Shown here one piece after another: positions 8,104 to 32,917 of a stretch of 64,000 nt of DNA. The position numbers and the translations under genes are program-made. The stretch is taken from sequence record PQ390715.1; one strand, 5' to 3'. Positions within the stretch are counted from its first letter, which is position 1. Every line of letters begins with the position of its first letter. The notes under the pieces were generated by a model, which ran no database searches, was not told the DNA's origin, and worked only from the letters and a program-made list of their open reading frames with translations.

Positions 8104-8180
8104 AAAAACACCTCATTATTCATTCACTACATGATAACACCAAATCATACACCAGTCAAGCTCATTTTTTGGATATGCAT

Positions 8181-8188: not shown

Positions 8189-8219
8189 CGTTATAATAAT
8201 TATACCAATGGAGGGATAA

Positions 8220-9374: not shown

Positions 9375-9410
9375 TAAAAAAAGCCACTACATTGTAGTGG
9401 CTTTAATTTT
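9375..9410. terminator. bidirectional intrinsic terminator
   Basis: AAGCCACTAC/GTAGTGGCTT hairpin flanked by A and T tracts between convergent genes. Confidence 0.85.
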
Positions 9411-9416
9411 ATCTAA

Positions 9417-11954
9417 TTATTTGAAATTGTCACGTAGAACTTCTTCAAGTGTTTTATCTGGATTGCTAATGGCTACATTATAAATCAATTCTTTAAATGC
9501 AGTTAGTGCCTGCTCAGTTGCTTCTGGACCAAAGTTCTCACTAATGCTTTTAAACATACTTTGTGCACGTTCTGATTTGATACAACTAGTTACAAACTTG
9601 TCAATTTCATTACGAAGCTGCTTAGTTGTCATGTCACCAATGAGCATCTCACTAATTTCTTTTGGTTCATCTGCACTTGTTCGGACATTCGTAAAACCAA
9701 ACACATCATCACCTGAGCCAAAGCTACGTTTTTCTTTTTTAGTTTCTTTTACTGGTTCTTCTTCAACTTCTTGTTCGTATTCTTTAGTAAAGAGATGAGA
9801 TAGTACATCATCAAGATTTTTAACCATACCGTCAATACGAGATTCAGCATTCTTGGATACATGTTTGAATGCTTGCTCTAGTGCTTTTTCTTGAATCTGG
9901 TCACGAACATTATTAACTACATTACGAAGTTTTTCATTACAGTTGTCTAAAATTTCTAATACTTCACCAGTTTTGATTTTTTCCAAAAGTACATCTAAAT
10001 CAGATTTTACATGTTGTTTTTGACTTACTTCACCATTAAGAATTGAATTCAATTCTTTAGCACCTTCAACTGCTTCTTCATGTGTTTTAAATTCAACTGG
10101 TACGTCAACACCATCCAGTACAATATTAAGCACTTTACCATCAACGTAGGCGTAGGAGTAAGATGCTTTTTTGAAAGAAATAGTTTTGAAGAAAATGTTG
10201 CTCATATTGATATACTCCTTAATGCCCACTAGCTGGGAAGGTTTTAAACATATAGTGACATTGTACTAAATCATCGAACTTCAAGCCGAAGTCTTTAGTA
10301 CCCATCAGTGTGTGGTAAAAATAATGCGAAATTGTATTAGTTTCAGCGTCTTTAATATAGATACCAAATTCGGTACAGCAAAACTGAACAACTTCATTAT
10401 AACTTTCTAACTTGGAAATTACAAGTACTTGATCATAAGAATTTTTATCAAATCCAATGATGTACATTTCCTCTGTTTCTGGGTGTACAATCATCCCACC
10501 GCGAGAAATAATTTTCTCGAAGTTACTGCTCAAGTACTGAATTGTTGAACTTAAGTTCATTTACAACTCCTTACGTATTACTCGTCCGGTAAGATGTTCA
10601 TCTGTACAGAACTTCATTATAAATGCTTTTAGATGGAAGTCTTCTAAAATTCTATATGCTTGCTTTTTCATAACGACTTCCTTCTTCTCCACATCAACAA
10701 TTATATCATGTTTCTCGTGAAGTTCCTGGATCATTTGATATGAATTCAAACTTAGTACGCTCATAACCACCAATGTCCTCCATCTCCCACAAAATTTGAA
10801 CTGCCACTTCTAATTCGTGGTGAATTTGAAAATAACCATTACTTGCAGTATAGATGTAGCCATTTTTAGTAATTGCATAACCCCACTTTTTACTTTGAGA
10901 ATGCATCTCACGTTTCAACCCATAAGGTGATGGTGGCTTCTTGACTGGTTCTGGTTCTCGGTTTTCGTTGTAAATCTCTTGTTCGATTCGCAACGCTTTA
11001 TGATATGAGTATACATGAATCAGGCGACAAAGTACAATAGTAATGCAACAAATAATTGTAAATGTTATCAAGCTCATCAATTTGCCCTCTGCCTAGATAC
11101 ATATTCATTAATTGCATCTTCCAAATCATACCCTGACATTTTTACATTATCAATTGAAACATGATATTTTTTCAGCACTTTTTGTCCAGCAGTGTTCTCC
11201 CATATAGACCCATCAGGCTCAATATGAACTTTATGGTTCAGGATGAAATCGAACATTTCTTCTTTTGATAAGTTTGCTTTACGGGTTTCAATGTGATTAG
11301 TATTAAGTAATTCACGAGTATGTTTAATGCCATATTCAGTGTGCACACCAACACTACGATGCAAAACTTTTAACTGCTCGGAAGCAGTCTCTTCATCATA
11401 AACATGAATAGTTTCAGTACTATATAAAATATCCTGAATATTACCAGTACTTACTTCTGTCCAAGTGTCTTTGAAATGAATTTGGATTGTTTTCATGGAA
11501 GCTCGTATTAGTTATATGCGGTGAATAGGTCAATGTTTTTATCATCTACACTGATTAATTTACCAGTTGAACTAACAAACACAATATTACCACCAGGGGT
11601 GAGTTGAACACGCTGGTTTACTGAATATTGATCACTAAGGTTATAATTAGCCCATTCAACTACATAACGCTGTTCAACACCGTTAGTATCATATAGATAA
11701 ACATGTGTAACGTCACGCATTTTTAAACGGTCTAACAGTGTAGAGTTGTCCATGAAATCCGATGGTGTATTGCTGCGTAATGCAATACCGAACTCACCGA
11801 TAACAGTACTAATTGTCAGTCCGTTTGAAAAACGGCTACAAAGAGTCTTCTCATCAGCAATATGCATCCATAAAACATTCTTTACATCAATATCAACAAA
11901 TTCACAGTTTTCAAAAACCAAACCTACTTTGGAAACTTTACCATTAAATTGCAT
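9417..11954 (-). other. run of 6 hypothetical genes (9417-10229, 10219-10560, 10561-10773, 10706-11080, 11077-11496, 11508-11954)
   Basis: Packed co-oriented ORFs. Confidence 0.75.
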
Positions 11955-12405
11955 TAGTAACTCCTATTTTTTTGTATTTTAAAATAAAATCTCTTACTGC
12001 TTTCATAAGTTTAAATGGAATAGCTAATTCTTTGACCGTACTATCCATGAAATGTTCTTCTTCTGTTTTATAGAATGTTGACATGAAATGGTCGCAATCA
12101 TCAATTCTATCCCAGAAATCTGAGACACTTGGCTTGTTTGCAATAACAGTGATTTTCTTATCAGTTTTAGTGTGGGAAGCATGTATCGTTAATCCAATAT
12201 CACCCTTCTCAACACGAATTATAAACGAATTATCAGATGTATAGTTCAGCCAACAATCGTCACCGAAGTATACAGTACTGTGTTTCTTCTGAAATGAAGT
12301 TGCGGTGTTAAGAACACCAATAACAACATCAACTGTTTTTTCATTTAAAATATTAGACATTTTTATTCCTGCTTCGTATGTTTCGTGAAATCTCAAATAT
12401 TCCAT
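11944..12405 (-). CDS. EExxFQ-motif family protein
   Basis: C-terminal TEEEHFMDSTVKE. Confidence 0.7.
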   Translation of the reverse strand: MEYLRFHETYEAGIKMSNILNEKTVDVVIGVLNTATSFQKKHSTVYFGDDCWLNYTSDNSFIIRVEKGDIGLTIHASHTKTDKKITVIANKPSVSDFWDRIDDCDHFMSTFYKTEEEHFMDSTVKELAIPFKLMKAVRDFILKYKKIGVTNAI

Positions 12406-12781
12406 TCAACTGCTCAACAGTTAAACCCTGTAAATCGTAAACTGTTGATAGTTGAAAGAACATCTCTGAATCTATAGTATCATGTTCAATTGGAAGACTC
12501 AAGAGGTCGTTATTAATAAAATAATCATATGTTCGAATTGTCAAAGAATCACCAAAGATATCAATGTAAAATTTCGGAACATTATGTAACGAAACATCTA
12601 TTAATATGTTTTCAGCATCTCTACAAGAAATTTTAGAATTATTTTTATAAGATTGGTATGAAAAATTATAAGGTTCATCGACCGATGTGTATGATGAGGT
12701 ATCACCTTCGGAAAATATTACACCACATTCAATAAGATGTGTTAACGACTTAGGTGGAATTTTTAACATTTCACTTCCCAT
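12353..12781 (-). CDS. EExxFQ-motif family protein
   Basis: C-terminal DSEMFFQLSTVYDLQGLT. Confidence 0.75.
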   Translation of the reverse strand: MGSEMLKIPPKSLTHLIECGVIFSEGDTSSYTSVDEPYNFSYQSYKNNSKISCRDAENILIDVSLHNVPKFYIDIFGDSLTIRTYDYFINNDLLSLPIEHDTIDSEMFFQLSTVYDLQGLTVEQLNGIFEISRNIRSRNKNV

Positions 12782-13199
12782 CCTTACTCATATTACTACG
12801 GATCACCCCACTAAGAAAACATATTTTCCTTAATGTATCATAACTGATATTTGTAAGATCATGTACAAAATTCAACTGCAAGTACATTTCTTCAGTTAAT
12901 TGATTAAATGTATCATCAACATGAATGTTAGTATGTTCCGTTATATCTATTTCTATATTATTTTCCCAAATATCAATGCTAACAGCATAGTCTGATGTAT
13001 GTCTGGATTGAACTGAAATAAAAATATTATTACTGTTGTATAATGTCTCGGTGTATCCATTCAAAAATGATCCAACGACAACATCAAAAATGCCATCTCT
13101 AATTGGGTTTTTTGTTTCAAACGTATCACTACAAACTTGACGGTATACAATGTCAACATACTTATCAATTAAAGTAAACAAATAACTCATTGCATTCAC
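12771..13199 (-). CDS. EExxFQ-motif family protein
   Basis: C-terminal TEEMYLQLNFVHDLTNIS. Confidence 0.7.
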   Translation of the reverse strand: MNAMSYLFTLIDKYVDIVYRQVCSDTFETKNPIRDGIFDVVVGSFLNGYTETLYNSNNIFISVQSRHTSDYAVSIDIWENNIEIDITEHTNIHVDDTFNQLTEEMYLQLNFVHDLTNISYDTLRKICFLSGVIRSNMSKDGK

Positions 13200-13424
13200 C
13201 TATATAAGAAAAAAGGCCGATTCATCGAATCAGCCTTAAGTATAACACAGTAGAAGTTAAAAAGTCAACTTCTAAATTACAGCATCCAAGAGGAATAAAA
13301 AGATACTGTTAGAGGGTAACGAATATAATGATTTTGAGGGTAATATCATTATACGTAAAAAAGTGATAGCTTCTATACATAAGGAGGAATCAGTACTGAC
13401 TAGAAGCTATCGGGTTAAACGATT

Positions 13425-13900
13425 TCAGTACTGAGTGTTTAGTTTAGGATGAGTATTTCCATCTTCGATTTGTTTTAGAATCGAGTCACGAATTTCTACT
13501 GCCCCTTGATAACTATATTTATCTTTTGGGATCACCCATGTATATTCACCATCAGTGGTTTTAAAATCAATACATGGATTATCCCTGTATTCAGATGCAA
13601 TGATTGAAATAACATGTAATGAATTCAATGAATGATTTGTATAAGGATAATTGTTATTGTCTCGGAACGTGAATGTTTTTAGTTCATCAGGTGCAACAAT
13701 GAATTCCATTATTCATCCTCGTACTTCTTGAATGGTGGAACATCTACCTTGAAGTCTTTGCACATCTTAGTTGTACGAACTTCAGTATTGTTGTGATAAT
13801 TTTTCTTAAATTCATAAGAAACATAATTACGAATACCAGGTGTATGAATAATAGCAAGAACCAATGTACGACCAAACAAGCATAATAAATTCCAGAACAT
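13425..13900 (-). CDS. two hypothetical proteins (13425-13709, 13709-13900)
   Basis: Coupled ORFs. Confidence 0.7.
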
Positions 13901-13909
13901 ATGAATCTC

Positions 13910-14275
13910 CTAATTGTGGGTTTTAACCAAACGTGAGACAGCTAGTATAGCATTAACCTCATCCAATGTCAACCCACCAATGTCATTAATCATTGAGTAC
14001 TGAAATAGTGATTCTTCAGTGTAATGGTAATCATGAGAAGCAATAAAGATTGCTGGTTTAGAGGCATCCAAAATTATCTTTGTCATTGTACTATATATAT
14101 CAAATTGATATAATAGATTTTCACCTGTATATGCTACGTAGATATTATTTGAATAGGCTGGATGTACCATTGTAAAACCATCATAACATAATATTTTTAT
14201 GTTCGGATCGTCAAAATTGCCTGTATAAAGGTTATTACAAACATCTTGCATTATACGTACTATTAGACTAGTCAT
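13910..14275 (-). CDS. EExxFQ-motif family protein
   Basis: C-terminal TEESLFQYSMINDIGGLT. Confidence 0.75.
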   Translation of the reverse strand: MTSLIVRIMQDVCNNLYTGNFDDPNIKILCYDGFTMVHPAYSNNIYVAYTGENLLYQFDIYSTMTKIILDASKPAIFIASHDYHYTEESLFQYSMINDIGGLTLDEVNAILAVSRLVKTHN

Positions 14276-14693
14276 TTAATGGATTTAGTACCTCTTCTGG
14301 AATCAACTTTTGAACTTTAAGTATAGCTTTAATGTCCTCAAATGTTAATCCTAATATGTCGTTAAGGAGGCAGTACTGGAAGAATTTTTCTTCAGTATCA
14401 ATATCGTTAACATTCAATTCAATTGATTCATCATCATAATCATAATCTTCATTATCACATTCATAACTTCTGAATATAACTTTTTCAAAATACACATCAA
14501 ATGAATAAAAATGATTATTGAATTCATAACCAAGAAAAATATTAAAACATTTACTCAAATCTGTGGTTTGATTCAAATCTGGATCATAGCAAAATACTCT
14601 AACTTCACCAATATCTTCTAATTGTACATCATGCAGTGACCATGCGTTGTTTTTTAATACATAGTTCACCATTTTAACAATGTTGTATGTCAT
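14268..14693 (-). CDS. EExxFQ-motif family protein
   Basis: C-terminal TEEKFFQYCLLNDILGLT. Confidence 0.75.
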   Translation of the reverse strand: MTYNIVKMVNYVLKNNAWSLHDVQLEDIGEVRVFCYDPDLNQTTDLSKCFNIFLGYEFNNHFYSFDVYFEKVIFRSYECDNEDYDYDDESIELNVNDIDTEEKFFQYCLLNDILGLTFEDIKAILKVQKLIPEEVLNPLND

Positions 14694-14699
14694 AGTGTA

Positions 14700-14789
<90 letters not shown>

Positions 14790-14810
14790 AGAAGTAAGAT
14801 AACCAACAAG

Positions 14811-14902
<92 letters not shown>

Positions 14903-14954
14903 GCCAAGAGTCGGCATAGGTGCAGCACTACAAAGTTCTTCAAGCTGCTTGGTA

Positions 14955-14986
<32 letters not shown>

Positions 14987-14987
14987 T

Positions 14988-15044
<57 letters not shown>

Positions 15045-15046
15045 TA

Positions 15047-16279
<1,233 letters not shown>

Positions 16280-16292
16280 TATATCATGTGAA

Positions 16293-17157
<865 letters not shown>

Positions 17158-17165
17158 CTTTTTTT

Positions 17166-17327
<162 letters not shown>

Positions 17328-17331
<4 letters not shown>

Positions 17332-17492
17332 GTTCGTACCATTATTTCAATAAAGAACCACGGATACGCTTCATGGTTTATAAGTTTATCGTATTCTGCT
17401 GGGTCTGACATGATTTCCCAATGATACTTTCTCCAGTTACCGAAACCTGCATATCTAAAATTAATGTCATTCATCCATTCTTCATGCGTCAT
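17328..17492 (-). CDS. MTHEEW-family 54-aa protein (not in ORF track)
   Basis: MTHEEWMNDINFRYAGFG...HWEIM...PWFFIEIMVRT. Confidence 0.75.
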
Positions 17493-17516
17493 GGTTTTTT
17501 AACCTTTAATTAAAAT

Positions 17517-17598
<82 letters not shown>

Positions 17599-17602
17599 AT
17601 TT

Positions 17603-17718
<116 letters not shown>

Positions 17719-17735
17719 ATGTGATGTCCCATTAT

Positions 17736-18008
17736 TTATGATTCAGTTTGAGGATTAAATTTGATAAATTCATCTTTATGTTCATCTTCAAACGCAATAT
17801 CTTCTACGTATTCAGGCCAAATCGTAGTGTCTCCTTGATAAAAGCGATAATTATCAAATACTGCACTACGCGTTCTTCCCTGTTCCCAGCCAATCGTACA
17901 GTCATGATATACATCCCCACTACTTGTACGAATACTAATGGTGTCTTGAGTTTCATAAAGAACTTCAATGCGTGTGTTACGATTTACGTTGAATTTTTCA
18001 AAATGCAT
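17736..18008 (-). CDS. hypothetical protein
   Basis: ORF with GAGG RBS. Confidence 0.7.
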   Translation of the reverse strand: MHFEKFNVNRNTRIEVLYETQDTISIRTSSGDVYHDCTIGWEQGRTRSAVFDNYRFYQGDTTIWPEYVEDIAFEDEHKDEFIKFNPQTES

Positions 18009-18061
18009 AATATTATCCTCATCTAGAACCAGTGATAATCATTATATAATGAATTAATGAT

Positions 18062-18280
18062 TTATGCAAGTGTTTTAGATACACCGACACCAATAATTCC
18101 AGTGATATCGATATGGATATTGGCAAGTTGATTACTATCATATGGGTTTGTTTCTGTAATAACCAATGTTGTATCATTGACTAAAACCACAGTACCTTTT
18201 ACACGATAACCATGTAGTAGTACTTGAACCTCATCTTCAGGTTTTAATGATTGAATAACTTCAAATAAAGTTGTTTCCAT
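18062..18280 (-). CDS. possible Sm/LSm-fold protein (probable start at METTLFEV)
   Basis: EVQVLLHGYRVKGTVVLVNDTTLVI...IHIDITGIIGV resembles Sm1/Sm2 beta pattern. Confidence 0.45.
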   Translation of the reverse strand: METTLFEVIQSLKPEDEVQVLLHGYRVKGTVVLVNDTTLVITETNPYDSNQLANIHIDITGIIGVGVSKTLA

Positions 18281-18296
18281 TTTTTGTATTCCTTGT

Positions 18297-18480
18297 TTAG
18301 TTTTGATTATTTGACTTTCTAAATGCCAGTTCGCATATAAACCAGGGTTTTCTGGTATCCAAAACATATGACCTGAAAAGATTTTCATCTCTTAATATAT
18401 CATAATGTACCTGACGAATGCCATTCCCAAAGCAGTCATGTTCTTTATGCTGTTTGGACATCCATTCTTCGTGTGTCATT

Positions 18481-18497
<17 letters not shown>
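18297..18497 (-). CDS. MTHEEW-family protein
   Basis: MTHEEWMSK..FGNGIRQVHYDILRD..PWFICELAFR. Confidence 0.75.
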
Positions 18498-18816
<319 letters not shown>

Positions 18817-18821
18817 TCTTA

Positions 18822-19016
18822 CTATTTTTTGTCTCTAATTGCAAGCTCATAGATGAACCAGTGGTTGCTATCCGCATCAAGTACAAATGATTTGAAAAGT
18901 TGTTTATCTTTTAACACATCATAATGACCTTGGCGTATACCAAAACCAAAAGGATTATGTTTGAATTTTAGTTCATCTATCCATTCTTTGTGTGTCATTT
19001 TATGTATCCAGTTCAA
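18822..19016 (-). CDS. MTHEEW-family protein
   Basis: MTHKEWIDE..FGFGIRQGHYDVLKD..HWFIYELAIRDKK. Confidence 0.75.
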   Translation of the reverse strand: MNWIHKMTHKEWIDELKFKHNPFGFGIRQGHYDVLKDKQLFKSFVLDADSNHWFIYELAIRDKK

Positions 19017-19070
19017 TTAAGTGTTTCATTTATTCTTCTGTAAAGAAAGCATTGCAATGGACAATGGAAA
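19000..19070 (-). pseudogene. remnant copy of the 3' end of the 18481-18696 gene
   Basis: tatgtatccagttcaattaagtg...gtaaagaaagca is near-identical to 18482-18540. Confidence 0.6.
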
Positions 19071-19076
19071 AGGTTA

Positions 19077-19256
19077 TTATATTTTTTTGTCTCTAACCGC
19101 AAGCTCATAGATGAACCAACGATTTCCATTCTCATCTAGTACATATGATTCGAACTTATATTTGTCTCGTAAAATATCGAAATGACCATCAATAAATCCA
19201 TTTCCAAACTGGTCATAACGTTTTTTCATCATTGCCATCCATTCTTCATGTGTCAT
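19077..19256 (-). CDS. MTHEEW-family 59-aa protein (not in ORF track)
   Basis: MTHEEWMAMMKKRYDQFGNGFIDGHFDILRD..RWFIYELAVRDKKI. Confidence 0.75.
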   Translation of the reverse strand: MTHEEWMAMMKKRYDQFGNGFIDGHFDILRDKYKFESYVLDENGNRWFIYELAVRDKKI

Positions 19257-19427
19257 CTCTTAATATCCATAACGGCTATACTAAAATATGTACCAAAATC
19301 ATCACAATTGATAATGTTGTTATAGTACTCAATTGGGTTACGCAATGATATATACAATTCAAGCTTAAAATAGTATATATCTGCTGCATTTATATTATAG
19401 TGTAGATTAAACCACTCATCAAATGTC

Positions 19428-19832
19428 TTAGGCTGCATTATATTTATCTTTATAAAAATCCATGATTTTAGTCAACAGTACTGCAATCGTATAATCTAAA
19501 TCAGGATAAAGTAAATTGTACTGAAATTCTTCCTCAACACTATAGTTAGTGGTACAGTACTGGTAATCTTTATAACCTATTGAAAAATAATTCGGATACA
19601 ATGTACAACGAAAGCGATAAGCTTCATCTGTCATATAATCATTGTATTCAACACAGAAGTATAGTGATTTTGAATTTAATTCGATAAGCTCCACGAAACC
19701 ATCTGGTAATGAATGGTTATAAATTACTGAATCTTCATTAAACCATTCATAGTATTTTTCCAAAAAATCACTAATGGATACATCCAGACTTTGTATAGGT
19801 GGAGTTATGATAATTTGAACTTCTTTATTCAT
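19428..19832 (-). CDS. EExxFQ-motif family protein (divergent)
   Basis: VEEEFQYNLLYPDL. Confidence 0.6.
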   Translation of the reverse strand: MNKEVQIIITPPIQSLDVSISDFLEKYYEWFNEDSVIYNHSLPDGFVELIELNSKSLYFCVEYNDYMTDEAYRFRCTLYPNYFSIGYKDYQYCTTNYSVEEEFQYNLLYPDLDYTIAVLLTKIMDFYKDKYNAA

Positions 19833-20377
19833 TTCGACCCCTTACTATATTTCACGTATGGGCTATCATACAGATCATAACTTTTTTGTGCACGTTCTTT
19901 TCGGCGTTCATACATGATTCTATCATACTCTTTAGCTTTCTGATTTGCTTCATTATACAATTTTAAAATTAGCAAAAATGCATCAAGATCGGGATAGTTT
20001 GCTGGATTGATAGTACTCAGCATAAATCGTTCTTCTTCAGTTCTAGCTAAGTCAAATTCATACTTAATAGTTTTATACCCACTCCATTTATATATATGCG
20101 TTACTTTATTAGTAAGTACATTATATTCAACGAAGTCAGTACTACCATCAAGTACACGAGTAATCTTAATAGATGTACCAATGACAATCTGTACAGAACT
20201 CATTTCTGAAGTTTTAAAGTAATAAATGTTATTACGGCGAAGATTAACTTCTCGATCTCCAATGCGAACATGCTTAATAACTTCCATTAATGGTTCTGGT
20301 ACACCACGAATTGGCATGTTAATGCTCCTTTTTAATTCTATACATTTTAACAGCACTGGTTTCCCAAAAGTCACCAT
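19829..20377 (-). CDS. EExxFQ-motif family protein
   Basis: TEEERFMLSTINP. Confidence 0.65.
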   Translation of the reverse strand: MVTFGKPVLLKCIELKRSINMPIRGVPEPLMEVIKHVRIGDREVNLRRNNIYYFKTSEMSSVQIVIGTSIKITRVLDGSTDFVEYNVLTNKVTHIYKWSGYKTIKYEFDLARTEEERFMLSTINPANYPDLDAFLLILKLYNEANQKAKEYDRIMYERRKERAQKSYDLYDSPYVKYSKGSK

Positions 20378-20585
20378 CTAAGTTGCTGAATTTATATATA
20401 GTTTCGAGATTTTCACCATCAAACGAAAACAACACAACATCTTCTTGTACAGTGCCGTTATGTAACATGATATCATAAACTTCATTTCTTACAAATAATT
20501 CTTTGGCCTTAGAAATATCAAAATCAATAAATTTCATATATCCTCCTATTATCATTATTTGTATTATATCAGAGTTTCATTGCAT

Positions 20586-20978
20586 CTACCAGCATGTTTT
20601 CATAACTTCTGTGATGTGATTCATTTTATCTTTAAGTACGTAAGGGATGCAAATTTCACCTGGGCTTAACGTTGTGTTCTTTTGAAACTCATCTTCTTCG
20701 GAATCAGCCAGGTAAAATGGGTGTGTCACAAAGGTATCATCAACTGGACGATTATGTGGTTTCATTAATGCATCATGATTGACAAAATAATAAGCATCAA
20801 TATCAGGACGGAAATACAAACAATCAACCTTAATGCACGGGTGTAACCATAAGGACAAAGAATATGTTATTTGGTTACCAATTTGTCTTGGGCCTGATGC
20901 AATTGTATTGATGTTATTTTTATCTTGTACCATTTCATAAATGAAATCTATCATTTCGTGTAGTTCTGATTCAGTCAT
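20586..20978 (-). CDS. EExxFQ-motif family protein (divergent)
   Basis: SEEDEFQKNTTL. Confidence 0.55.
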   Translation of the reverse strand: MTESELHEMIDFIYEMVQDKNNINTIASGPRQIGNQITYSLSLWLHPCIKVDCLYFRPDIDAYYFVNHDALMKPHNRPVDDTFVTHPFYLADSEEDEFQKNTTLSPGEICIPYVLKDKMNHITEVMKTCW

Positions 20979-21204
20979 TTTATTTCCTTAAAAAAATACC
21001 CAGTACTTGACTGGGTATTTACAAAGTAACGTTTAATCAGATTTCTTTTCGTAATCTGTAAAAACAGTCAGGATTGTTGCACATAGTGAATCAACTACTG
21101 ATGCACGTGTGTTATCAAGGTCTTTAGCTAGTGCTTGAATCTCTTGAAGTTTTACTACTAAGTCGATTTTTTGATTACTCATTACTTCTCCTATTGGATG
21201 TTTT

Positions 21205-24200
21205 TTAGATATTAATTTTTATACCACTAAGGTCTAGAACTTTTTTATTAGATACTGTTTCTGATTCTAATTTAGTTTCTTTTACCTCAGTGTTAATATT
21301 TACGTCATCTTTGAGAATATCAGGGATAATACCATGTTGAATATCATCGTACATAGAAACAACGGTTTCGGCACAAGATAACATTTCACGAACTTTGTAC
21401 TGATAACCCTGTGGTAACTCATTGATGATTTCCATAATATCTAGTAATTTAGTTTGGACATCAATAAGAATTTTTCTTGATTTTTCTGGTTCCATTACTC
21501 CAACTCCACAACATTACTTTTTTTGGATTTAATCACTGATGGTGGCTCATTAACGCTTGTTTGACCACGAAGTGATTTTTCCAACGCAATGATGCGTTTT
21601 AAAGTTTTTATTGATGGTCGCTTCTTCGTCAACTCAGCTTTTGCTTCTGAATAATATTTTCTTACATATCCATATGCATAATATTTTGAACCAATGAAAA
21701 TTTCAGCAACTACTGGATTTGAGTATTGTGTATCAATTCCATCCAGTTCTGTGTCTACCGAGTAAAATGAAATATTTGTATCACATGCTGAAATTTTAGC
21801 TACCAAAAGATTTGCATCAAACTTATCTAAAATTAGAGAAATTGTTTTTTCGGCATCAGCACTATATGGCATAGCAGACATTAAAAGTTGAAATGTCTTA
21901 AAGTACTTACTTCCACTAATCATGGTATTGAAAATCAATCCAATGGTGATTAATGCAAGTGTACCAATACACACAAACAAAAACCAATATTCAACACTCA
22001 TTTATAAATCCTCTTACTTTATATGATTAAAATGCCCCATCAAAAATGATGAGGCGGTAAGATAAATTACTTACGATTTGCTTTACGCAGTTCAGATAGT
22101 TCTTCTTGTAGACTTTTCTTCCATGCAATCAAGTGAGCAAAACGGATTGGCCTTGCACCAGTACCGTGGAATACTGCTAGAGCTTCTTCTGCTTGATGAA
22201 TCTGGAATTGAATGTAGTTCACAGTGCGGTCGAAGTCGGTGATATCTAGTACTTGTGCGTTAGTTTCTTTAGCCATTTTAATACCCTTTTATTTCTTTTT
22301 TATGAAAAACCCTCATCATTGAGGAATGGTTTGCATTTTAATATCTGCCGATAACAAACATTATATCACAATATCTGTTCTTGTCCAATTTTTAATTATT
22401 AGAAAGAACAATTTTTGAAACTGGTAAATCTGTATCATTTACACGTTGTTCATTATATCCATTCTGTACAAGAATGTCAATAACTTTAGAGTTATCAATT
22501 GTAAATGATTCTAACATATCATATCGGTAATAACCAATAGTCTGACTGAACTCATATTTTCCTGGCTGTTGACGACAACAAGTATTTGTTTCAGCCATAA
22601 TCTTATTGATTAGGTAATATGTTTCAGTACTATCAATATTGGGAATATAGATCTTATCATCAAAATGAATTACTTCATGTTTATTCATAGAGTGATTCAA
22701 TCTCCGCTTTAAGAATGGAAATGATCTCTTTCTGAAGGCCAGTAATTTCACTGTTCAAAGATGATAGTCGCTTCGATAATGCCATGAATTGCTTTGCATC
22801 TTCTTTAGAACGGTCATTTCGTACTTTATCAGAACTCCAGTTAGCATATGATTGCTCATCTTTCCTGTTAAGGATATCCCAGTCTAAACGTACTAGTTTA
22901 CGTTCTTTCTTCAGTTCGCTTAAGCGAGATTTCATTTCGTCTTTAGTCATTAGATTGTTCCTTTCATGAAGTCTGGAATAACGATTACGATAGGAGGATT
23001 ATACTCTACATAACCATTTTTTGTCAATAGACTTTTAATATCTGAAATCACATTATCATGCTGTTCAATATCTTTATCACAAAAGATTTCCAATTCTTTC
23101 TGAAACGGTTTTTTAACCGAGATGTTTTGAGTCAGTGTTTGGATTCTCTGTAACATATCAATTGGATCTGGACTGAACTCATTACCAACATAAAGAGTAC
23201 CAGATGCATCTTTTTCTAGCAAGACTTCTAAAATTTTCATTTCGTATCCTTCAATTTACTAAAGTTTTCTCGTGTAAATCCAGGAACTGGAAAATATACA
23301 TCACAGTCAACATCAGGATTCATAATTACCATGTCATTACATATTATATCACGAATTTTACTGCCGTCCACGATTTTTTGCATTAAATCATTCCATTTTT
23401 TACGAGAAATAACGAATGTACTAATTATACATAAATCATGTCCACGTTTTGAAATATATCCTAGTACTTCATTATCGTAAACAACACGTATGGTAACTTT
23501 TCCAATTGTAACCCCTCTTACTGGATTAATACTAGTATCTTCAAAAATTAATTCTAATTTAAGTTTACCATTCGAAATAAGTGATGAAGTATATCTAGAA
23601 ACCATTTTATCAATTTCTTGAGTCAAATCATCTCTATTTAGATATTCAAATACAGAATAAGTTAATTCGTCTGCACCTAGTTCTTGGATAGTTGGAAGCT
23701 GTGCCACCATATCCAAAGATACAGGTTCGATATATATTCTTTCAATATCAGAAGATTGTACAAATAGACAACCATCAGGTGTCGTATCTCTAACAATTTC
23801 GGCATAATATGTATAAAGATAAAAAACATTAGACTCTGATGAGTCAGTTTCTACCCAAATCTCAGATTGTTTCATTTCATCTTTATGAAGAATTCGTTGA
23901 GTAAATCCTATGTAAAAACCAAGATATAAATCATCATCAGTTTCAAACGGATTAAACATCAAATACGGATATTTGTCAAGGTACTCATTGAACTTACGCT
24001 GTACATCTCTATCACAATCCATGATATACTTTCGGAATTCAGAAATGATTATTTTTTCTAATGACATAATCAATCCTCAAGATGCATGTAGTACATAAAC
24101 ATCGCCAACCATATAAAAAACCCGAAACAACGAAGTAAAATATCAATTGTTGGATCTGTCCCACCATTAACTTGGTAAACGATTACTGGGATTAAAGCAA

Positions 24201-25224
24201 TAGTAATAGACACAGCACATAAGATGAATGCAACAAACACCTCAAACATAAACTTAATCGTTTCCATTATTATCCTTCAATGTGTAGTGTAGTACATCTA
24301 AAAAGTTATACATTGATTCATTACGCACAACCTTGATTGTTAAATTACGACAACCCAACATACGTTTGAGGCGACGCTTCACCGCAGTTAAATCATGTGT
24401 ACTATTCGTATACAGACCATTAACCTGACCTGGAACAGTTGGCACATGAAGAATGTAATCATAATTCATTAGTAAGCGTTGATTATATTTCTTTAATGCT
24501 TGCTTGTATTCTGAAATATTTTCAAAGAATGTACAATAACGGTCGTAACGATTCATTTTATTCAAAATTGAAATACGAAAAGCGTTACCACTATTCCAAT
24601 CATCTTCAGTTGGGTTTGGGTTGATATGTGCCATGTTAGCTGTACTGTACCCACCACTTGTAAAAACTTCAGAATATCCATTCTCAAAAACATACAATGT
24701 TGCTTTGTGGCCTCTGAATTCTTTACGGTACTTTGACAGTACTTGAATGTGATTACGCTTGGACTTGTACATCTCGTAACCTTCATAATCTGAACTGAAT
24801 TCACAAATTTTATCAACACCAGCCATTTCGTATATCCTCGTTTAATTAATATAGGAGTATTATATATACTCCATTTTCATGTGTCAAGCTTTATAATACG
24901 GAAGACTTTTTACTAAAGATTCAGACGTATTATTTTTTACCCATGTACTACCGTTATCATTAGATACGTATCCAGTACCATTAATAAATTTACGCATAAT
25001 ACCAGTAAAAATATTAGTATACACCATTACTCAGTATCCTTTGGTTTAGAATGTAAACCATACTTTTCATCATAACGATCATAGGTAGTACCATTAGTAC
25101 TAGCTTTGATGCTTTCAGTACGATTGATTGGTTCAATCTTAACACCACGATAACCAATCTCTTCTTTAAATTGTTCCCATGATTCACGTAGACTCATTTT
25201 AGCCCCTTTTGTTATTTCATACAC
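21205..25224 (-). other. run of hypothetical genes (21205-21495, 21495-22001, 22067-22276, 22392-22751, 22681-22950, 22950-23240, 23237-24073, 24070-24267, 24254-24826, 25027-25224)
   Basis: Packed co-oriented ORFs; TTGACA-17-TATAAT promoter near 24860-24888. Confidence 0.75.
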
Positions 25225-25357
25225 TCACGTAGGTCAATCTTTTCTACTGACCCACCGAGCACTAGATAGTGAAAATTAGAATCTTTGTTTGCCATATTCA
25301 AAAGATCTGCTTTCTGTTGAAGCGTAAAGCGTGAAGTACTGTTACGTACTGGCATAG

Positions 25358-25801
25358 TTACTCCTTAAAGTAGATATCACGAATTTGTTTAATCATCTCT
25401 AACTCTTGAAGTCCTATCATACCAAAGTCTTCTTGTATTGTCAACTGCTGAAAGTACATTTCTTCTAAATTATTGTACGGGATCTCAACAAGATTCAAAG
25501 GCTCACTTTCCACACGATAAATTGTATCTTGTACATCATGTTTTTCGATATGAATACTAAATGTATCTTTTTGAATTCTAAATTTATAAAATGTTTGATT
25601 TGTTGTAAACAAACCAACTTTAGGATGGAATCCCATTTGAATACACAAACAATCTTCATCCTTATATTTCAAGTATATAGCTTTTGACGTTGCTAGTACT
25701 TTAGATTTTGGGAAATAAAAATCACCCATCAGCTTCTGACGTTTCCAGTCCTCATATACAACTGGATGCTTAACCTTCTTCAATTGGTGCAGTACTGTCA
25801 T
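25358..25801 (-). CDS. EExxFQ-motif family protein
   Basis: LEEMYFQQLTIQEDFGMIG. Confidence 0.75.
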   Translation of the reverse strand: MTVLHQLKKVKHPVVYEDWKRQKLMGDFYFPKSKVLATSKAIYLKYKDEDCLCIQMGFHPKVGLFTTNQTFYKFRIQKDTFSIHIEKHDVQDTIYRVESEPLNLVEIPYNNLEEMYFQQLTIQEDFGMIGLQELEMIKQIRDIYFKE

Positions 25802-26181
25802 AGTTTTTTCCAGTCCAATGAATCGAAATCGATTTGTTCAGGATTATCAACAGCGACAACTCGTGCATTATGAAGAGTTTCAAAGTAGCCGTTCCACGGT
25901 GTACGTACTGGGATTTTTTCATCTCCAATTTTTACAAAGAAAGAGAATTCACATGACATTGGATCAAACCATTCTTTATGTTTGGCTTCATCGATTATTG
26001 TAGCACGTTCGTTACTATATGCATCATCGAGTTTCTTAAAGAATACCCAATGCTCTTTCAAAGACTGTAATGCTACAACTGCCTCATCCTTTGATTCCCA
26101 TTGAACATCCAATGTATTGGTAACTGAATCTTCAGTTTCAGTGTCCCCTGTAGTGTAATGTACTTCAATGCAGTATTTCAT
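25798..26181 (-). CDS. hypothetical protein
   Basis: Coupled ORF. Confidence 0.7.
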   Translation of the reverse strand: MKYCIEVHYTTGDTETEDSVTNTLDVQWESKDEAVVALQSLKEHWVFFKKLDDAYSNERATIIDEAKHKEWFDPMSCEFSFFVKIGDEKIPVRTPWNGYFETLHNARVVAVDNPEQIDFDSLDWKKL

Positions 26182-26636
26182 TATTCATCACCTTTTAGTA
26201 ATTTACAAATTTCAATCATATGATAATAACATGTATTCCAAAATTGTCCATTAGTACTTCCAACATCATGCACAGTACTTTGTTGGAAAACATATTCATC
26301 GTTGAACATCATTTTAATATCATCAATGTAAAATTCTGGTTTTGAATCATTATTGTATTCAATACTCGTTTCACCATCTGGATCAAGTGAAATTGATGAT
26401 ATGTCGTGAATTCCTCTCGGATTTGTTGGATAAATTCTCAACGTAAGAGGATAGAAGTCTGGATCGGTTTCATAAGTATATTCGATTATGTAATAACCAT
26501 CACCAGTAATTGATTGATATTTAAATGTAGTTTCAATTGAATTTGAGATGTTAAATCCCAGTTTCTTTATCTCATGTAGATGTGATAATATTTTATGTAA
26601 AGATCCTAAAACATGAATCAAATTATCAATTTTCAT
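26181..26636 (-). CDS. EExxFQ-motif family protein
   Basis: NDEYVFQQSTVHDVGS. Confidence 0.75.
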   Translation of the reverse strand: MKIDNLIHVLGSLHKILSHLHEIKKLGFNISNSIETTFKYQSITGDGYYIIEYTYETDPDFYPLTLRIYPTNPRGIHDISSISLDPDGETSIEYNNDSKPEFYIDDIKMMFNDEYVFQQSTVHDVGSTNGQFWNTCYYHMIEICKLLKGDE

Positions 26637-27175
26637 TTACGATCCTTTGAAAAGTTCAGTTTAAAAGTTTTACCAAATTCCATTGTAGCTTTACCCAGAT
26701 TGTTAATATTTTCTTTCAACATTTCTTGCATCTTCCTAATACTTTCAATCCAGGCTTCTTCTTCGATACGAAGAATTGGTCGCAATCGTTCCTGAATATC
26801 GTTAAAACGTGTATTGAGTTCAACCAATGATTCATATGTGAAATCTTTCATATCGATAATAGTACTTCTTTGAAAGAATTCTTCTTCAGACAAATTACTT
26901 AAAATGATTTTATCACGACCAATAGATAATGTCAATTCATCATCTTTATTTTTTTTAATTACAATACTAACAGGTGTTTTTAATGTAATGCAAATATCAT
27001 GATTATTAAATGTTTCAGTTTGGTTTGACATTCTGAATTGAAGTTTCCCAGATAAAGCATGTACTGGTGATGGTTTCTTTTTACCAGTAATAACATCTTC
27101 CCATGAATCGAGAATATTATTAATAATTTTAACATAAGGAATTGGCATATATGCACCTATGAAAAATCCACGCAA
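26633..27175 (-). CDS. EExxFQ-motif family protein
   Basis: SEEEFFQRSTIIDMKDFT. Confidence 0.75.
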   Translation of the reverse strand: MRGFFIGAYMPIPYVKIINNILDSWEDVITGKKKPSPVHALSGKLQFRMSNQTETFNNHDICITLKTPVSIVIKKNKDDELTLSIGRDKIILSNLSEEEFFQRSTIIDMKDFTYESLVELNTRFNDIQERLRPILRIEEEAWIESIRKMQEMLKENINNLGKATMEFGKTFKLNFSKDRK

Positions 27176-27190
27176 TGCGTGGATTTGTAA

Positions 27191-28533: not shown

Positions 28534-28585
28534 ATAAAATCCTTTTTATATTGTTAAGGTACTATAATATATTATAGCATCTTAT

Positions 28586-29176: not shown

Positions 29177-29190
29177 CTTATTACCTTTAG

Positions 29191-31723
29191 TTAATTGAAC
29201 TCTACTTCTGGATAATGATTATAGAACATCTCACGAACTGCGTCAAGATGTTCTTGAAATTGTTTTATATCTTCTAATGATGGTGCATCAATAACAGTAC
29301 TAAGTTGAAACAACGATTCTTCTGTGTTATATAGTGACATATCAAATGAGTTATTGTTGTCATCAGTTATGATATTATCACAAATTTCGTAAGTGTCAAT
29401 ACAAACATCATCAAGTGTTGTATTATCATATACAGTGTATACGAATACAAAAATAAAAGAAGAATGTTCTTTACCATAACGCGGTGGGTCATATGTCACA
29501 TAGCATTTGTGGTCAAATGTATCGAGTTCCATAGACACCACCCCAGCTTCACGATATTCATTAGTTTCACTGGTAAGATCCGGTATTGATGTTATCGAAA
29601 GTAAGTGGAGAAATTTACTTGGATTTAGCATTTCACCACCATTGGATTTTGCGACTGTATATTAAAAAGGGATAATACAAAAGTACTCAATTTTTCGAAA
29701 CAATCTACTAATACATTTAACTCATCATAACTAACACCAATTTCACGAATAAGCGATTGTTGAAAGAATCCTTCTTCGGTTAACGTTAAACTACTAACCT
29801 CAGTTATGTTATAATAACTTTGGGATGTTGTGGTTGATATTAGTTGTATTGCAATCGTATCTGATGTTGTGTTGTACAGATATAAATATTTTGTTTTTCT
29901 TTCCAATGGATCTATACATGAAAGATCGATCATGTCATAGGTTTTTCCAATAAAAATATTACAATCATCTGACAATTCACAACAAATGCGTATATGTTCT
30001 TTCGGGTCATGAACACGTTGTGTGTCAAATTCACATGACATTGCAATTTCAAAATGATTTTTTATTTCGTCAACATTCATCTGCACCCACCATTAATTCT
30101 TATATTTGTATAGTTTAATGCTTTTTTAATAATACCAATTTCTGTAATTCCTATTACATTTTTCTCAATCAATGACAATTGGAATAGTTCCTCTTCGGAA
30201 ATATCAATACTGTGGATTCTTGTACAATAATCGTTGAAGTCATATACATATCGTATTGTATAGTCGTTTATAGAAACTGATACAATTGCAATCCCATCAT
30301 GGATGTAAGTTAGTTCATTTGAGTATCTATTAAAAATTAACCTATCTGGTGAACCTATTGGTAGTTGAAATGTATTTCTAGTATCTTGAACAATAACAAA
30401 ATCATCATCTATATTTCTACTCAGAACACCCAAAATATCATATATAGTAGTCATGTTATTCTTTACCTTCAGCAGTTCTGATAATTTTCATAACTTCTCT
30501 GGATAGTGCGTATATCTTTTTATAGTACTCAAATGTAACTGAACCAAAATCATTAATAGTACTAGCCATGAAGAACGATTCTTCTGTATATAGTTCATTT
30601 GACAAAGCAACCAGTTCTTGGTGAAATTTTGCGTCCTTCCAATAACGAAATTCAAAAACAAATTGTCCGTCATGACCGACTCTACAACATTCAGATCGAT
30701 CACTGTCTACACAGCTAAACACAATATCCCTTTCAGAGTCGTACCAGATATTTCCAATATTTGTTTCAATAACAGCATAATCAATTTTTGTAGAATTGGG
30801 AATTAAACCTTTTTTCACCAGCACTAAACTGGTATTATCAATATCTAGTAAACTTACCATATCAATTCCCCATTACTAAAGTGTTTTTAATCTCCAACAA
30901 TTCACTATACATCTTCTTGAATTGTAATATATCTTCAAAAGTAATACCACCAAGATCATCAACTAATGAACGTTGGAATAAAGATTCACTTGTTTGTAAT
31001 GTATCTAAATCGGTGATTTTTAATAAAGAACTTGGATTAAGTGTTTCGACTAGTAGTATGTTTTTGTATGGTACATATGTGATCTTGATGTTCTTTTTAT
31101 AATTAATCTTATAAAATCGCATAATTGACGATTCATCACTTAGTTGGATAATTGGGTCGTCTTGTTCATTAGACCACCATACAGTACTAGTCATATGATT
31201 GACGTGGTGGTTCAATTCTGATATGTCCAAATCTAAAAAATATTTTAGTTCATTGTGTAAATCTAAACTCATAAATTTATCCTCAATGCAGCATCATCAT
31301 GTATTGTAGGATAAACCCACAATAATGTCAAGATGTGAAATAATTATACCAGTAATATAGTTCTTTTAATTCTTCAGTACTGAACAATACTTCTTCTATT
31401 GTAGATTGTTGAAAGTGATATTCATCATTTAGATACATAGAAATATTACTATATACTTTCCTATTGTATTGACATAAAAAAGAAGTTTTTTGATTAATGT
31501 ATTCAGTAAATGTTAATTTATCTAACTCAATATCGAATGATAATTTAATAATATGACTATTATCATTTACATACATTAGTTTCTTTGAAAAATGATCAAT
31601 TGTAATATATTCTTTATGAGAGAACTGAAATATATTATTAAATTTATTACCATTTGTGCTTCTAAATTTTTCAAGGTAATAAGAAAGTGGTTTAATTATT
31701 GAAGTTCCAATATTGTTCTTCAT
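29191..31723 (-). other. tandem array of six EExxFQ-motif genes (29191-29631, 29625-30086, 30077-30454, 30456-30860, 30862-31272, 31328-31723)
   Basis: TEESLFQLSTVID, TEEGFFQQSLIRE, SEEELFQLSLIEK, TEESFFMASTIND, TSESLFQRSLVDD, NDEYHFQQSTIEE. Confidence 0.85.
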
Positions 31724-31883
31724 ATATCCTCAATTTTAGATAAGAAAAATGCCCCGAAGATCGGGGCAGTACTAAAATGATTTTGTACCAAAAGGGGAAT
31801 AAGAACAAAATGAAAATATAATAACGCATCATTATTATGTAAGGGAGGAAAGTAACATGATATGTTAACCATTTCTGGTATAT

Positions 31884-32435
31884 TTATTTATCATTTAATT
31901 CTTTAAGTTGGGTTTGTATATCTTTAGTTATATTTCGAATTTTCTTAAAGCAATAAACACTATCGTCCAATTCGATTTTAAGTTCATGTGTAAATGCATA
32001 CAGAAGTTCAGCAAATACTAAATCTTGACGCATCCAGTTTCCATCTTTATATAAAGTCATTACACAATATGGGCATTCACTATTAGAAGTTTGCTTTCCA
32101 ATAAAAACACTTTGAATTGATTCATGCTTAAAGCCAATAAAACTTTCATTTATTTTTTTAATTTCAGTACTGATATCGAATTTAGCACTGGTGTTGATTG
32201 CAAAAATTTTATTTCCACTTTCATCAGTATTGATGTTGAGTTCAATATCACTACCTAGTTTACGTACTGCTAGAGTATAAAGAAGTAATTCATACATGTC
32301 GTAACTTGTTACATTACCATTTGGTGCAATTACATCAACACTAACACCGTGCATTTTTACTTCTGTATTAAATCCATCTTTATCAGAAAGAAAATCAGTG
32401 ATTTGCTTTGTAAGGATTTTAATTTGGTCTATCAT
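31884..32435 (-). CDS. hypothetical protein
   Basis: ORF between terminators. Confidence 0.7.
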   Translation of the reverse strand: MIDQIKILTKQITDFLSDKDGFNTEVKMHGVSVDVIAPNGNVTSYDMYELLLYTLAVRKLGSDIELNINTDESGNKIFAINTSAKFDISTEIKKINESFIGFKHESIQSVFIGKQTSNSECPYCVMTLYKDGNWMRQDLVFAELLYAFTHELKIELDDSVYCFKKIRNITKDIQTQLKELNDK

Positions 32436-32488
32436 ATTTCATTTCCTTATGTGATAAAAGCCTCCATAATGGAGGCTTTTGTATTTAC

Positions 32489-32917
32489 TTAGAGAGATTC
32501 TTCGTATTCAGCAACAATCTCAACCATTTCATTAATGAACTTGATGTGAGAATGTGTCACTGTACGGAAGTCGTAAACAAGTGACTGTTGGAAAAATACA
32601 TCTTCATCAAGAGAACCATCAAAGTTCAAATCAATGTTTTCATCGTCATTGCTTGGTGCAACTTTAATATTCAGAAGATTTTCATCAACTGCAAGTTTTA
32701 CAACACAACCCAGTGCAATGGCAAGAACATATGCTGGTTTCTTAGCTTTTTCATTACGGAATGGTGCACGTAGAGCACAAAAAGTACTGCTAATCTCATC
32801 ATTTGGTTCTTTGTATTTAACATTGACCATTAGTTCTTCGATTTTGACGCTCTCAATAACACGACCAGTTTCTGGAGCGAAGAAAGAATGTTCACGGATA
32901 GTTTGTTCGATATTCAT
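32489..32917 (-). CDS. EExxFQ-motif family protein
   Basis: DEDVFFQQSLVYDFRTVT. Confidence 0.75.
   Translation of the reverse strand: MNIEQTIREHSFFAPETGRVIESVKIEELMVNVKYKEPNDEISSTFCALRAPFRNEKAKKPAYVLAIALGCVVKLAVDENLLNIKVAPSNDDENIDLNFDGSLDEDVFFQQSLVYDFRTVTHSHIKFINEMVEIVAEYEESL

Follow-up and report, generated by a model that had tools for sequence, protein, structure and literature searches.

A large family of small, mostly acidic proteins with one near-invariant helix and a predicted common fold in RaK2-like jumbo phages

What kind of protein does a phage maintain in dozens of copies that share one near-invariant stretch close to the C terminus and almost nothing recognizable ahead of it? 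The question is raised by 19 small genes in a 64,000-nucleotide stretch of sequence record PQ390715.1 (hereafter, the window), which is 100% identical to positions 124001 to 188000 of Escherichia phage SHEFM2K, a 348-kb Asteriusvirus and RaK2-like jumbo myophage. An original prediction, made from the letters of the window alone, described these genes as about 19 paralogs with divergent N termini and a shared C-terminal module and proposed that they are modular adaptors or effectors. The observation stands and was understated: the genes belong to one family that is almost never found outside the RaK2-like jumbo phages and of which SHEFM2K carries at least 60 copies. The interpretation changes, in that structural models present the motif as an integral, capped, and packed helix of a single domain and not as a separable docking module. 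We tentatively favor the view, at a little under an even chance, that the family is a diversified set of early, host-directed binders built on one fold for takeover of the host or counter-defense.

The 19 genes are real by several measures. Open reading frames (ORFs) of 117 to 182 amino acids, taking the longest ORF, lie where they had been predicted, in the tandem arrays that had been described, and all 19 carry the motif, at about residues 83 to 126. The region that holds them is coded on the minus strand throughout, and the G+C content is about 32%. The SHEFM2K record labels every one of them “hypothetical protein” and for 4 of the 19 annotates a start later than that of the longest ORF. 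A strict regular expression for the motif, run over the six frames of the window, returned 13 matches, every one inside the 19 genes; the chance level was 0.0 for nucleotide shuffles and 0.01 for residue shuffles of 120 minus-strand ORFs. A profile hidden Markov model (HMM) built from 164 family sequences picked exactly these 19 window ORFs (E values of 2e-20 to 5e-8), the best score of any other ORF being an E value of 0.05. The codons of the motif vary (AGT and TCN for Ser, TTT and TTC for Phe, CAA and CAG for Gln). Because synonymous codons, including both Ser codon families, vary freely, conservation acts at the level of the protein and not of the DNA, which rules out causes at the DNA level, for instance gene conversion or a promoter embedded in the genes.

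The window is 95 to 99% identical to PBECO4, 121Q, phAPEC6, and about 30 other Asteriusvirus genomes (348 to 386 kb). The count of 19 is correct for the window and too low for the genome, in which about 45 more members lie upstream: 31 at 34 to 54 kb (501 to 20234 of the extracted piece), about 9 to 11 at 13 to 34 kb (13194 to 33978 of a second piece), and four longer ones at 82 to 122 kb, one of which has a Lys-rich N-terminal extension. Within the part of SHEFM2K that was scanned, which ends at 188 kb, the total came to at least 60 copies, or about 10% of the 669 annotated coding sequences (CDS) of the genome. The upstream arrays are annotated as phrog_9317, 15629, 13866, and 12674. In phage 121Q, matches to the back-translated motif DNA pattern were confined to two regions, the counterparts of the window and of the upstream arrays.

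An HMM search across phage genomes, which the original prediction had proposed as a check, recovered the family in RaK2 (at least 19 members within 34 kb), in pieces of 121Q (at least 23), and in an unrelated metagenome contig (nine inside 8 kb). When 1.84 billion representative proteins were scanned in full by HMMER with the 19-sequence profile, 148 clusters (50% identity) were recovered at E values of ≤0.001. The proteins in these clusters are all 62 to 209 amino acids long, nearly all have the motif near the C terminus, and the sources of the clusters that we looked up were assembled metagenomes or contigs of about 360 kb. In IMG/VR, the motif DNA pattern matched 22 stretches. Contigs of 345 to 378 kb carry 20 of these matches; among such contigs were one of 345,809 bp (RaK2 sized, with seven matches), one of 348,532 bp (121Q sized), and one of 358,663 bp (GAP32 sized). 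In 596 Gb of bacterial and archaeal genomes, the same pattern gave 27 scattered single matches, and only one of these matches is a plausible member: an 81-residue ORF in Pantoea rwandensis (NZ_MLFR01000023.1; 6077 to 6322, plus strand, of the extracted stretch; E = 2.5e-5). The features that define the family were found together, namely, a match to the HMM, a set layout around the motif, and tandem arrays in contigs of 345 to 378 kb. The layout comprises about 98 residues N-terminal and about 28 residues C-terminal of the motif; in 160 full-length sequences, the medians were 98 residues ahead (interquartile range [IQR], 92 to 105) and 28 behind (IQR, 25 to 31).

No named family accounts for these proteins, as had been suspected from the sequence. 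Searches of Pfam-A with the family gave only sporadic single-member matches (E ≥ 0.002), the C-terminal module alone matched nothing in Pfam below an E value of 0.046, and NCBIfam and PADLOC gave no matches to the family. Ten longer members (163 to 218 amino acids) searched against Pfam for fused domains gave no match, and a word-index search with a long member found nothing new. We found no paper in the literature that describes the family. The PHROGs database does hold the same proteins, and window members match their own ortholog groups there with E values of 1e-58 to 1e-118 (phrog_17453, 24941, 24510, 21500, 23322, 12674, 13866, 9317, 15629, and about 15 more), a few of which match one another. 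PHROGs differs from our description in that the proteins are distributed over more than 20 separate groups without a function; it does not record that they form a single family, nor does it note the motif, the fold, or the number of at least 60 per genome.

A sequence-profile search of the PDB returned only Im9, the colicin E9 immunity protein, with E values of 0.4 to 0.6, which are not significant. The profile of the C-terminal helix-loop-helix aligns to residues 8 to 48 of Im9, which we take to be its two N-terminal helices, with a similar T-E-x-E-F-x-Q and S/T-x-E-E-L pattern, and the proteins on both sides are small and acidic. However, Im9 is an all-helical protein of 86 amino acids with no sheet, whereas the window members have 117 to 182 amino acids and a predicted sheet, and their neighbors are other members or genes of unknown function, with no adjacent nuclease toxin gene. 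Membership in the colicin/pyocin DNase immunity family was rejected, given that only Im9 chains were found, at those E values, and that Pfam gave no match to that family.

To describe the motif, we numbered alignment columns from the near-invariant Phe (position 0) in 164 sequences; choosing the anchor by pattern inflates the shares somewhat. Position −5 is T (0.60), S (0.27), N (0.06), or D (0.04), followed by E at −4 (0.93), E at −3 (0.95), and E at −2 (0.48). An aromatic or Leu residue precedes the Phe (F/Y/L at −1, 0.83; F at 0, 0.99), and the motif continues with Q (0.88) or M (0.12) at +1, S at +3 (0.88), T (0.52) or L (0.42) at +4, V/I/L at +5 (0.96), and D at +7 (0.74). The T/S-x-E/D helix that had been noted after the motif is real, with T at +12 (0.38) and E (0.51) or D (0.15) at +14. 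The motif is the most constrained element of the domain. It combines an N-cap residue and a first turn of acidic residues with a pair of aromatic residues and with small or aliphatic ones, and a second capped helix comes after it. An EF-hand reading of the D-x-G loop was dropped; its spacing does not fit, and Pfam reported no EF-hand.

Ahead of the motif, similarity fades almost completely. BLASTP with the N-terminal parts only gave a single marginal pair (E = 0.007), and phmmer clustering of 162 N termini left 106 components. Even profile-profile comparison (hhalign) of 11 subfamily N-terminal profiles gave E values below 0.01 in 4 of 55 pairs, versus 0 of 55 reversed controls, with median scores of 11.7 and 10.6, respectively. 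As the original prediction had it, there is no obvious N-terminal similarity; by these comparisons, the N-terminal 100 or so residues are unrecognizable between subfamilies, even at the level of profiles.

AlphaFold models were built, as had also been proposed, for two members with unrelated N termini, using alignments of paralogs and orthologs (members are named here by their lowest window coordinate). In the model of 13910 (predicted local distance difference test score [pLDDT], 75.7; predicted template modeling score [pTM], 0.73), a helix at residues 4 to 15 is followed by five strands, a helix at 87 to 96, and a helix at 104 to 120. In that of 32489 (pLDDT, 88.7; pTM, 0.83), short N-terminal helices are followed by seven strands, a helix at 105 to 114, and a helix at 122 to 141. 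Both models are one compact domain with the same order of elements and no low-confidence linker, and in both the motif forms the first of the two C-terminal helices after the sheet (block pLDDT, about 78 to 90). We postulate from these models that all members share one layout, with an N-terminal helix, an antiparallel sheet of five to seven strands, the motif helix, a short loop, and an amphipathic final helix. Residue −5 sits exactly one residue before the predicted start of the motif helix in both models. Since T, S, N, and D are the classic helix N-cap set, we read the models as indicating that the residue at −5 caps the motif helix and that the last helix starts in the same manner, with T at +12 and E at +14.

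A Foldseek search of BFVD with the 13910 model gave matches over about 130 columns (TM scores of 0.4 to 0.73; 8 to 29% identity) to uncharacterized proteins of phages UB, CBB, RaK2, and GAP32, Yersinia phages fHe-Yen9-03/04, and an Erwinia jumbo phage. Against the PDB, Foldseek gave no match at E values of ≤0.001, the best being 0.37 for the 13910 model and 0.09 for the 32489 model. Because two such dissimilar members are modeled as the same compact domain, the proposed division into a docking motif and a variable target-binding part does not fit the models, in which the motif is an integral helix. The suggested parallel with viral F-box and ankyrin expansions fails on the same ground, no separable docking domain being predicted. 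The original prediction had also named the opposite outcome, a uniform fold in which the motif is just core packing, and here the result is divided: one fold with a capped helix was predicted, but the two E residues, the Q, and the S are conserved beyond the need for capping.

We assessed selection against phage WPEC3 (about 87% DNA identity). The ratio of nonsynonymous to synonymous substitution rates (dN/dS) was below 1 for every family gene, and because it always is, we consider the family genes functional and under purifying selection. The median dN/dS was 0.24 for the family versus 0.11 for 28 neighboring genes (Mann-Whitney p = 0.003). Pooled over 18 pairs, the ratio (omega) came to 0.10 within the 13-residue motif, against 0.30 in the N-terminal part and 0.28 in the last helix. 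The syntenic block holds 19 to 20 members in phAPEC6, WPEC3, and A4 (19 in A4). Each copy, in short, is retained and is constrained less outside the motif than within it. Median protein identity to WPEC3 was 78% for the family and 90% for the neighbors (p = 0.053), and median identity to A4 was about 41 to 47% for the family and 71 to 73% for the neighbors (p = 0.052 for 47% versus 73%). For the six-gene array at 29191 to 31723, identity to the genes in the corresponding positions of A4 is only 25 to 46%, compared with 70 to 98% for the genes on either side.

The proteins themselves are, judged by sequence, small, mostly acidic, and soluble. Isoelectric points (pI) of the window members fall between 4.1 and 4.9 save for five exceptions of up to 9.4; the family median is 4.8, and net charge reaches −21. 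A hydrophobic 19-residue stretch resembling a transmembrane segment occurs in 2 of 164 sequences, and in 32489, one of the two, it is modeled as strands. The orthologs in phAPEC6 are gp083, 084, 087, 088, 093, 102, 103, 105, 120, 121, 127 to 132, and 134, plus two uncalled ORFs. For the latter, which are the orthologs of 12353 and 25358, the phAPEC6 record (MK817115.1) has no CDS call; the ORFs are intact and are 95% and 100% identical, respectively. The 62 proteins that mass spectrometry detected in the phAPEC6 virion (PMC7247149) include none of the annotated orthologs, and on this virion proteome we rejected packaging of the family as internal virion proteins.

The original prediction placed the arrays in early operons, and promoter-like sites suggest that the family genes may be expressed early. 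Between window positions 11000 and 34500, the sigma-70-like sites that agree with the consensus at 11 or more of 12 positions number 13. All of these are on the coding (minus) strand, several of them right before family genes or arrays. In a study of phage CBB, a block of small genes, CBB_390 to CBB_546, was suspected to be an early region (PMC5259590). The best PHROG matches of several window genes are CBB proteins with ordinals within that block, which is a loose link.

How might these observations fit together? We speculate that the family members are early host-directed binders because they are acidic, soluble, and absent from the virion, lie among small genes behind putative host-type promoters, and diverge fast. 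The C-terminal helical hairpin would serve as a structural keystone that frees the remaining sequence to drift or diversify, and the variable sheet and N-terminal helix would carry the specificity of each copy. The genes would be transcribed early by the host RNA polymerase and would supply stoichiometric binders of different host proteins, or of proteins of competing elements, for takeover or counter-defense; an anti-defense role, which the original prediction had raised, or a role in host takeover is plausible. One scaffold would then address many targets, as in the Bcl-2-like families of poxviruses, which resemble the present family in their paralog arrays, divergence beyond recognition, a single small fold that is kept, and proteins outside the virion. 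The two are not homologous, the predicted alpha/beta fold here differs from the all-helical one there, and the phage family keeps a near-invariant 13-residue motif.

Several points weigh against this reading. The binder and takeover roles are argued by analogy, and the acidic pair, the Q, and the S are conserved more strongly than helix capping requires. The fold rests on 2 models among more than 160 members, and the 13910 model is of moderate confidence at its pLDDT of 75.7. Faster divergence than that of neighboring genes is borderline in two of the three comparisons (p = 0.05 to 0.06), and an omega of about 0.3 represents relaxed or locally diversifying constraint and not demonstrated positive selection. 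Total counts of promoter-like sites were not above those in shuffled sequence (56 versus 60.7 and 76 versus 72.5), the strand bias being present only in the strongest sites, and we found no transcriptome of a RaK2-like phage that carries the family.

Because the near-invariance of the acidic pair exceeds the need for capping, a shared ligand or partner has to be weighed. Under this alternative, which recasts the original prediction for a protein of one domain and which we regard as unlikely but worth pursuing, the conserved helix, above all its acidic pair with Q, S, and D, would bind the same host or phage machine in every case. That machine could be a protease, RNA polymerase, or the ribosome, and the variable sheet would select cargos or conditions. 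It would explain why 9 of the 13 motif positions are strongly conserved on every side of the helical wheel, why E (0.93), E (0.95), Q (0.88), and S (0.88) persist in 164 sequences that are otherwise unrecognizable, and why the omega of the motif is one-third of that of the rest. In the models, however, the motif lies in a confidently predicted helix within a compact domain and not in a tail or linker; capping roles would account for the residues at −5, +12, and +14, and the replacement of Q by M only (0.12) fits a packed site better than a hydrogen-bonding one. The strong form of the idea, in which all of the at least 60 paralogs plug their acidic helix into one host or phage machine while hypervariable sheets choose the targets, as a combinatorial adaptor library, seems to us somewhat less probable again.

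The original prediction had suggested substrate adaptors for a protease, pointing to HslV-like and ClpS-like genes in the window. The ClpS-like gene was confirmed at 56020 to 56565 (minus strand; Pfam PF02617; E = 2e-5), whereas a scan of 20 other window proteins turned up nothing HslV-like. The ClpS-like gene lies about 23 kb away, outside the arrays, and is all that speaks for the protease adaptor idea; the family has no homology to ClpS or SspB. A test for docking-tail adaptors of the SspB type or ClpS was likewise negative, the family having no Pfam match and the motif being helical in the models and not a flexible terminal peptide. What the family has in common with F-box and ankyrin adaptors, ClpS, and SspB is the idea of a constant and a variable element in many paralogs; it differs in that its constant element is predicted to be an integral helix, not a separable domain or flexible tail, and it has no sequence relation to them. 

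The high conservation of the helix might also reflect nothing but a requirement of the fold, with the copies doing unrelated phage-internal jobs as regulators or as accessories of assembly or replication, or persisting as weakly selected duplicates. The predicted single fold with its capped motif helix and a dN/dS always below 1 agree with this, and the steady copy number and position in the syntenic block fit fixed individual roles better than an arsenal of fast turnover. On the other hand, the genes lie among small unknowns with sigma-70-like promoters, outside the structural and replication modules, their orthologs are missing from the phAPEC6 virion, they diverge faster than their neighbors, and housekeeping roles sit poorly with a family that has grown to about 10% of all genes. 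We consider this explanation rather improbable.

Alternatively, the proteins could form acidic oligomers that imitate nucleic acid or sequester basic proteins of the host, among them nucleoid proteins and DNA-binding defense proteins; p32/MAM33 proteins and phage DNA mimics are precedents for such mimicry or sequestering. The low median pI and the net charge would suit this role, the elements of the 32489 model follow one another as in p32 (a helix, seven antiparallel strands, and two helices), and C1QBP/p32 chains recur among the weak Foldseek matches to both models (3rpx_A, with a TMq of 0.37 and a prob of 0.44, and 1yqf). None of those matches is significant, however (E = 0.31 for 3rpx_A and 0.28 to 3.4 for 1yqf), and none of the sporadic Pfam matches is to MAM33. 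Several members are neutral or basic (pI 6.3 to 9.4), and strand number varies, the 13910 model having five strands and not seven. The likeness to p32 (gC1qBP/MAM33) in acidity and in the element order of the 32489 model is a lead only, and we hold a p32-like role to be doubtful. Least credible of all, and in our view very improbable, is that the motif is a 3C/TEV-type processing site, cut after the Q so that the C-terminal hairpin is freed. As a pattern, E at −4 and −3, an aromatic residue at −1, F at 0, and Q at +1 do fit E-x-x-[YF]-x-Q, but the site falls within a confidently predicted helix, the residue after the Q is variable with the conserved Ser one position later, M replaces Q in 12% of sequences, no cognate chymotrypsin-like protease was noticed (no search aimed at one was made), and the only annotated head protease is a standard prohead maturation protease.

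The family members of the window, the putative promoters, and related features are collected in Table 1.

TABLE 1 Coordinates of family members and associated features (window positions unless another sequence is named; lengths by longest ORF; promoter matches are putative)
Feature	Coordinates	Strand	Motif (nt)	Remarks
Family member, 153 aa	11944..12405	-	12028-12066	HMM E 9e-16
Family member, 142 aa	12353..12781	-	12434-12472	HMM E 3e-14
Family member, 142 aa	12771..13199 (record start 13190)	-	12858-12896	Leu replaces near-invariant Phe; HMM E 7e-17
Family member, 121 aa	13910..14275	-	13982-14020	AlphaFold H-5E-H-H; pLDDT 75.7, pTM 0.73
Family member, 141 aa	14268..14693	-	14358-14396	Nearest paralog of 13910
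Family member, 117 aa	16744..17097	-	16813-16851	Solitary among tRNA genes
Family member, 134 aa	19428..19832	-	19503-19541	Divergent motif; HMM E 2e-10
Family member, 182 aa	19829..20377 (record start 20317)	-	20003-20041	Basic; 57-residue tail beyond motif
Family member, 130 aa	20586..20978	-	20664-20702	Most divergent motif of all; HMM E 5e-8
Family member, 147 aa	25358..25801	-	25430-25468	
Family member, 151 aa	26181..26636	-	26265-26303	
Family member, 180 aa	26633..27175 (record start 27148)	-	26852-26890	72-residue tail beyond motif
Family member, 146 aa	29191..29631	-	29287-29325	Lowest-coordinate gene of six-gene tandem array
Family member, 153 aa	29625..30086 (record start 30080)	-	29742-29780	
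Family member, 125 aa	30077..30454	-	30161-30199	HMM E 2e-8
Family member, 134 aa	30456..30860	-	30549-30587	
Family member, 136 aa	30862..31272	-	30955-30993	
Family member, 131 aa	31328..31723	-	31391-31429	Final gene of six-gene array
Family member, 142 aa	32489..32917	-	32570-32608	AlphaFold H-7E-H-H; pLDDT 88.7, pTM 0.83
Sigma-70-like promoter match, 10/12 with TG	13239..13268	-		Upstream of 12771/12353/11944 trio; putative
Sigma-70-like promoter match, 12/12	15076..15103	-		Upstream of tRNA-Thr and 14268/13910 pair; putative
Sigma-70-like promoter match, 11/12	17129..17156	-		Directly upstream of 16744-17097 gene; consensus only, putative
Sigma-70-like promoter match, 11/12	31303..31331	-		Gap upstream of 30862-31272 gene; putative
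Uncalled phAPEC6 orthologs	1348-1764 and 14511-14954 of MK817115.1 stretch			Intact ORFs
Upstream small-gene runs, SHEFM2K	20224-26142 (54-60 kb piece), 6384-11187 (80-85 kb piece)			Piece coordinates

The longest ORFs of the first two genes, 11944 and 12353, overlap by 53 nucleotides. The real start of the 11944 gene is probably a later Met, because its PHROG match begins only at residue 16.

Other genes in and around the arrays deserve mention. Six tRNA genes (Thr, Asn, Met, two Ser, and Gly) lie between family arrays at window positions 14711 to 18794 (minus strand), and sites matching the sigma-70 consensus are found directly upstream of two of them (15103 and 16677). Among the tRNA genes, at 17167 to 17492 and 18822 to 19256 (minus strand), there are four phrog_10970 genes of about 55 to 60 amino acids, by annotation a small tandem family of their own. 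Long tandem runs of genes for about 60 to 80 amino acids also occur elsewhere in SHEFM2K, at 54 to 60 kb and 80 to 85 kb, including about 25 copies of phrog_4148 and at least 10 of phrog_11711. In the piece whose positions 6384 to 11187 are the 80-to-85-kb run, a block at 11291 to 25853 holds 14 RCC1-like “chromosome condensation” genes. A gene for peptidyl-tRNA hydrolase (PTH2) was found in or beside family arrays in phage A4 (20935 to 21345 of the stretch) and in a metagenome contig (3072 to 3404) and is not present in the window.

The ClpS-like gene adjoins a gene for a full-length IF3 homolog (IF3_N plus IF3_C; 56579 to 57082, minus strand) and one for a KTSC-domain protein (55403 to 55948, minus strand). 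Nucleotide metabolism genes confirmed by Pfam, all on the minus strand, are those for an NT5C-like 5′-nucleotidase (43578 to 44204), RNase H (59391 to 59837), and a MazG/PRA-PH-like pyrophosphohydrolase (62217 to 62954).

Virus multigene families built on one fold are already a known kind; what is new here is the fold, the motif, the bacteriophage host, and the scale. Genes without a known function make up more than 80% of those in RaK2-like jumbo phages; in phAPEC6, the figure is 83% (PMC7247149). About 10% of RaK2 proteins were reported to be paralogs of each other (PMC3622015), and the papers on RaK2 (PMC3622015) and CBB (PMC5259590) mention unnamed paralogs in passing. Dozens of “hypothetical proteins,” spread over more than 20 PHROG groups, can now be regarded as one family with one predicted fold and one near-invariant helix, which reduces about a tenth of the gene content of such a phage to a single tractable question. 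If the proteins are host-directed binders, few diversified arsenals known from phages would be as large, and new small inhibitors of bacterial proteins could be drawn from the family; if they have one shared partner instead, they would represent a new adaptor principle. As no solved relative of the fold could be detected, much would be learned from a structure under either reading.

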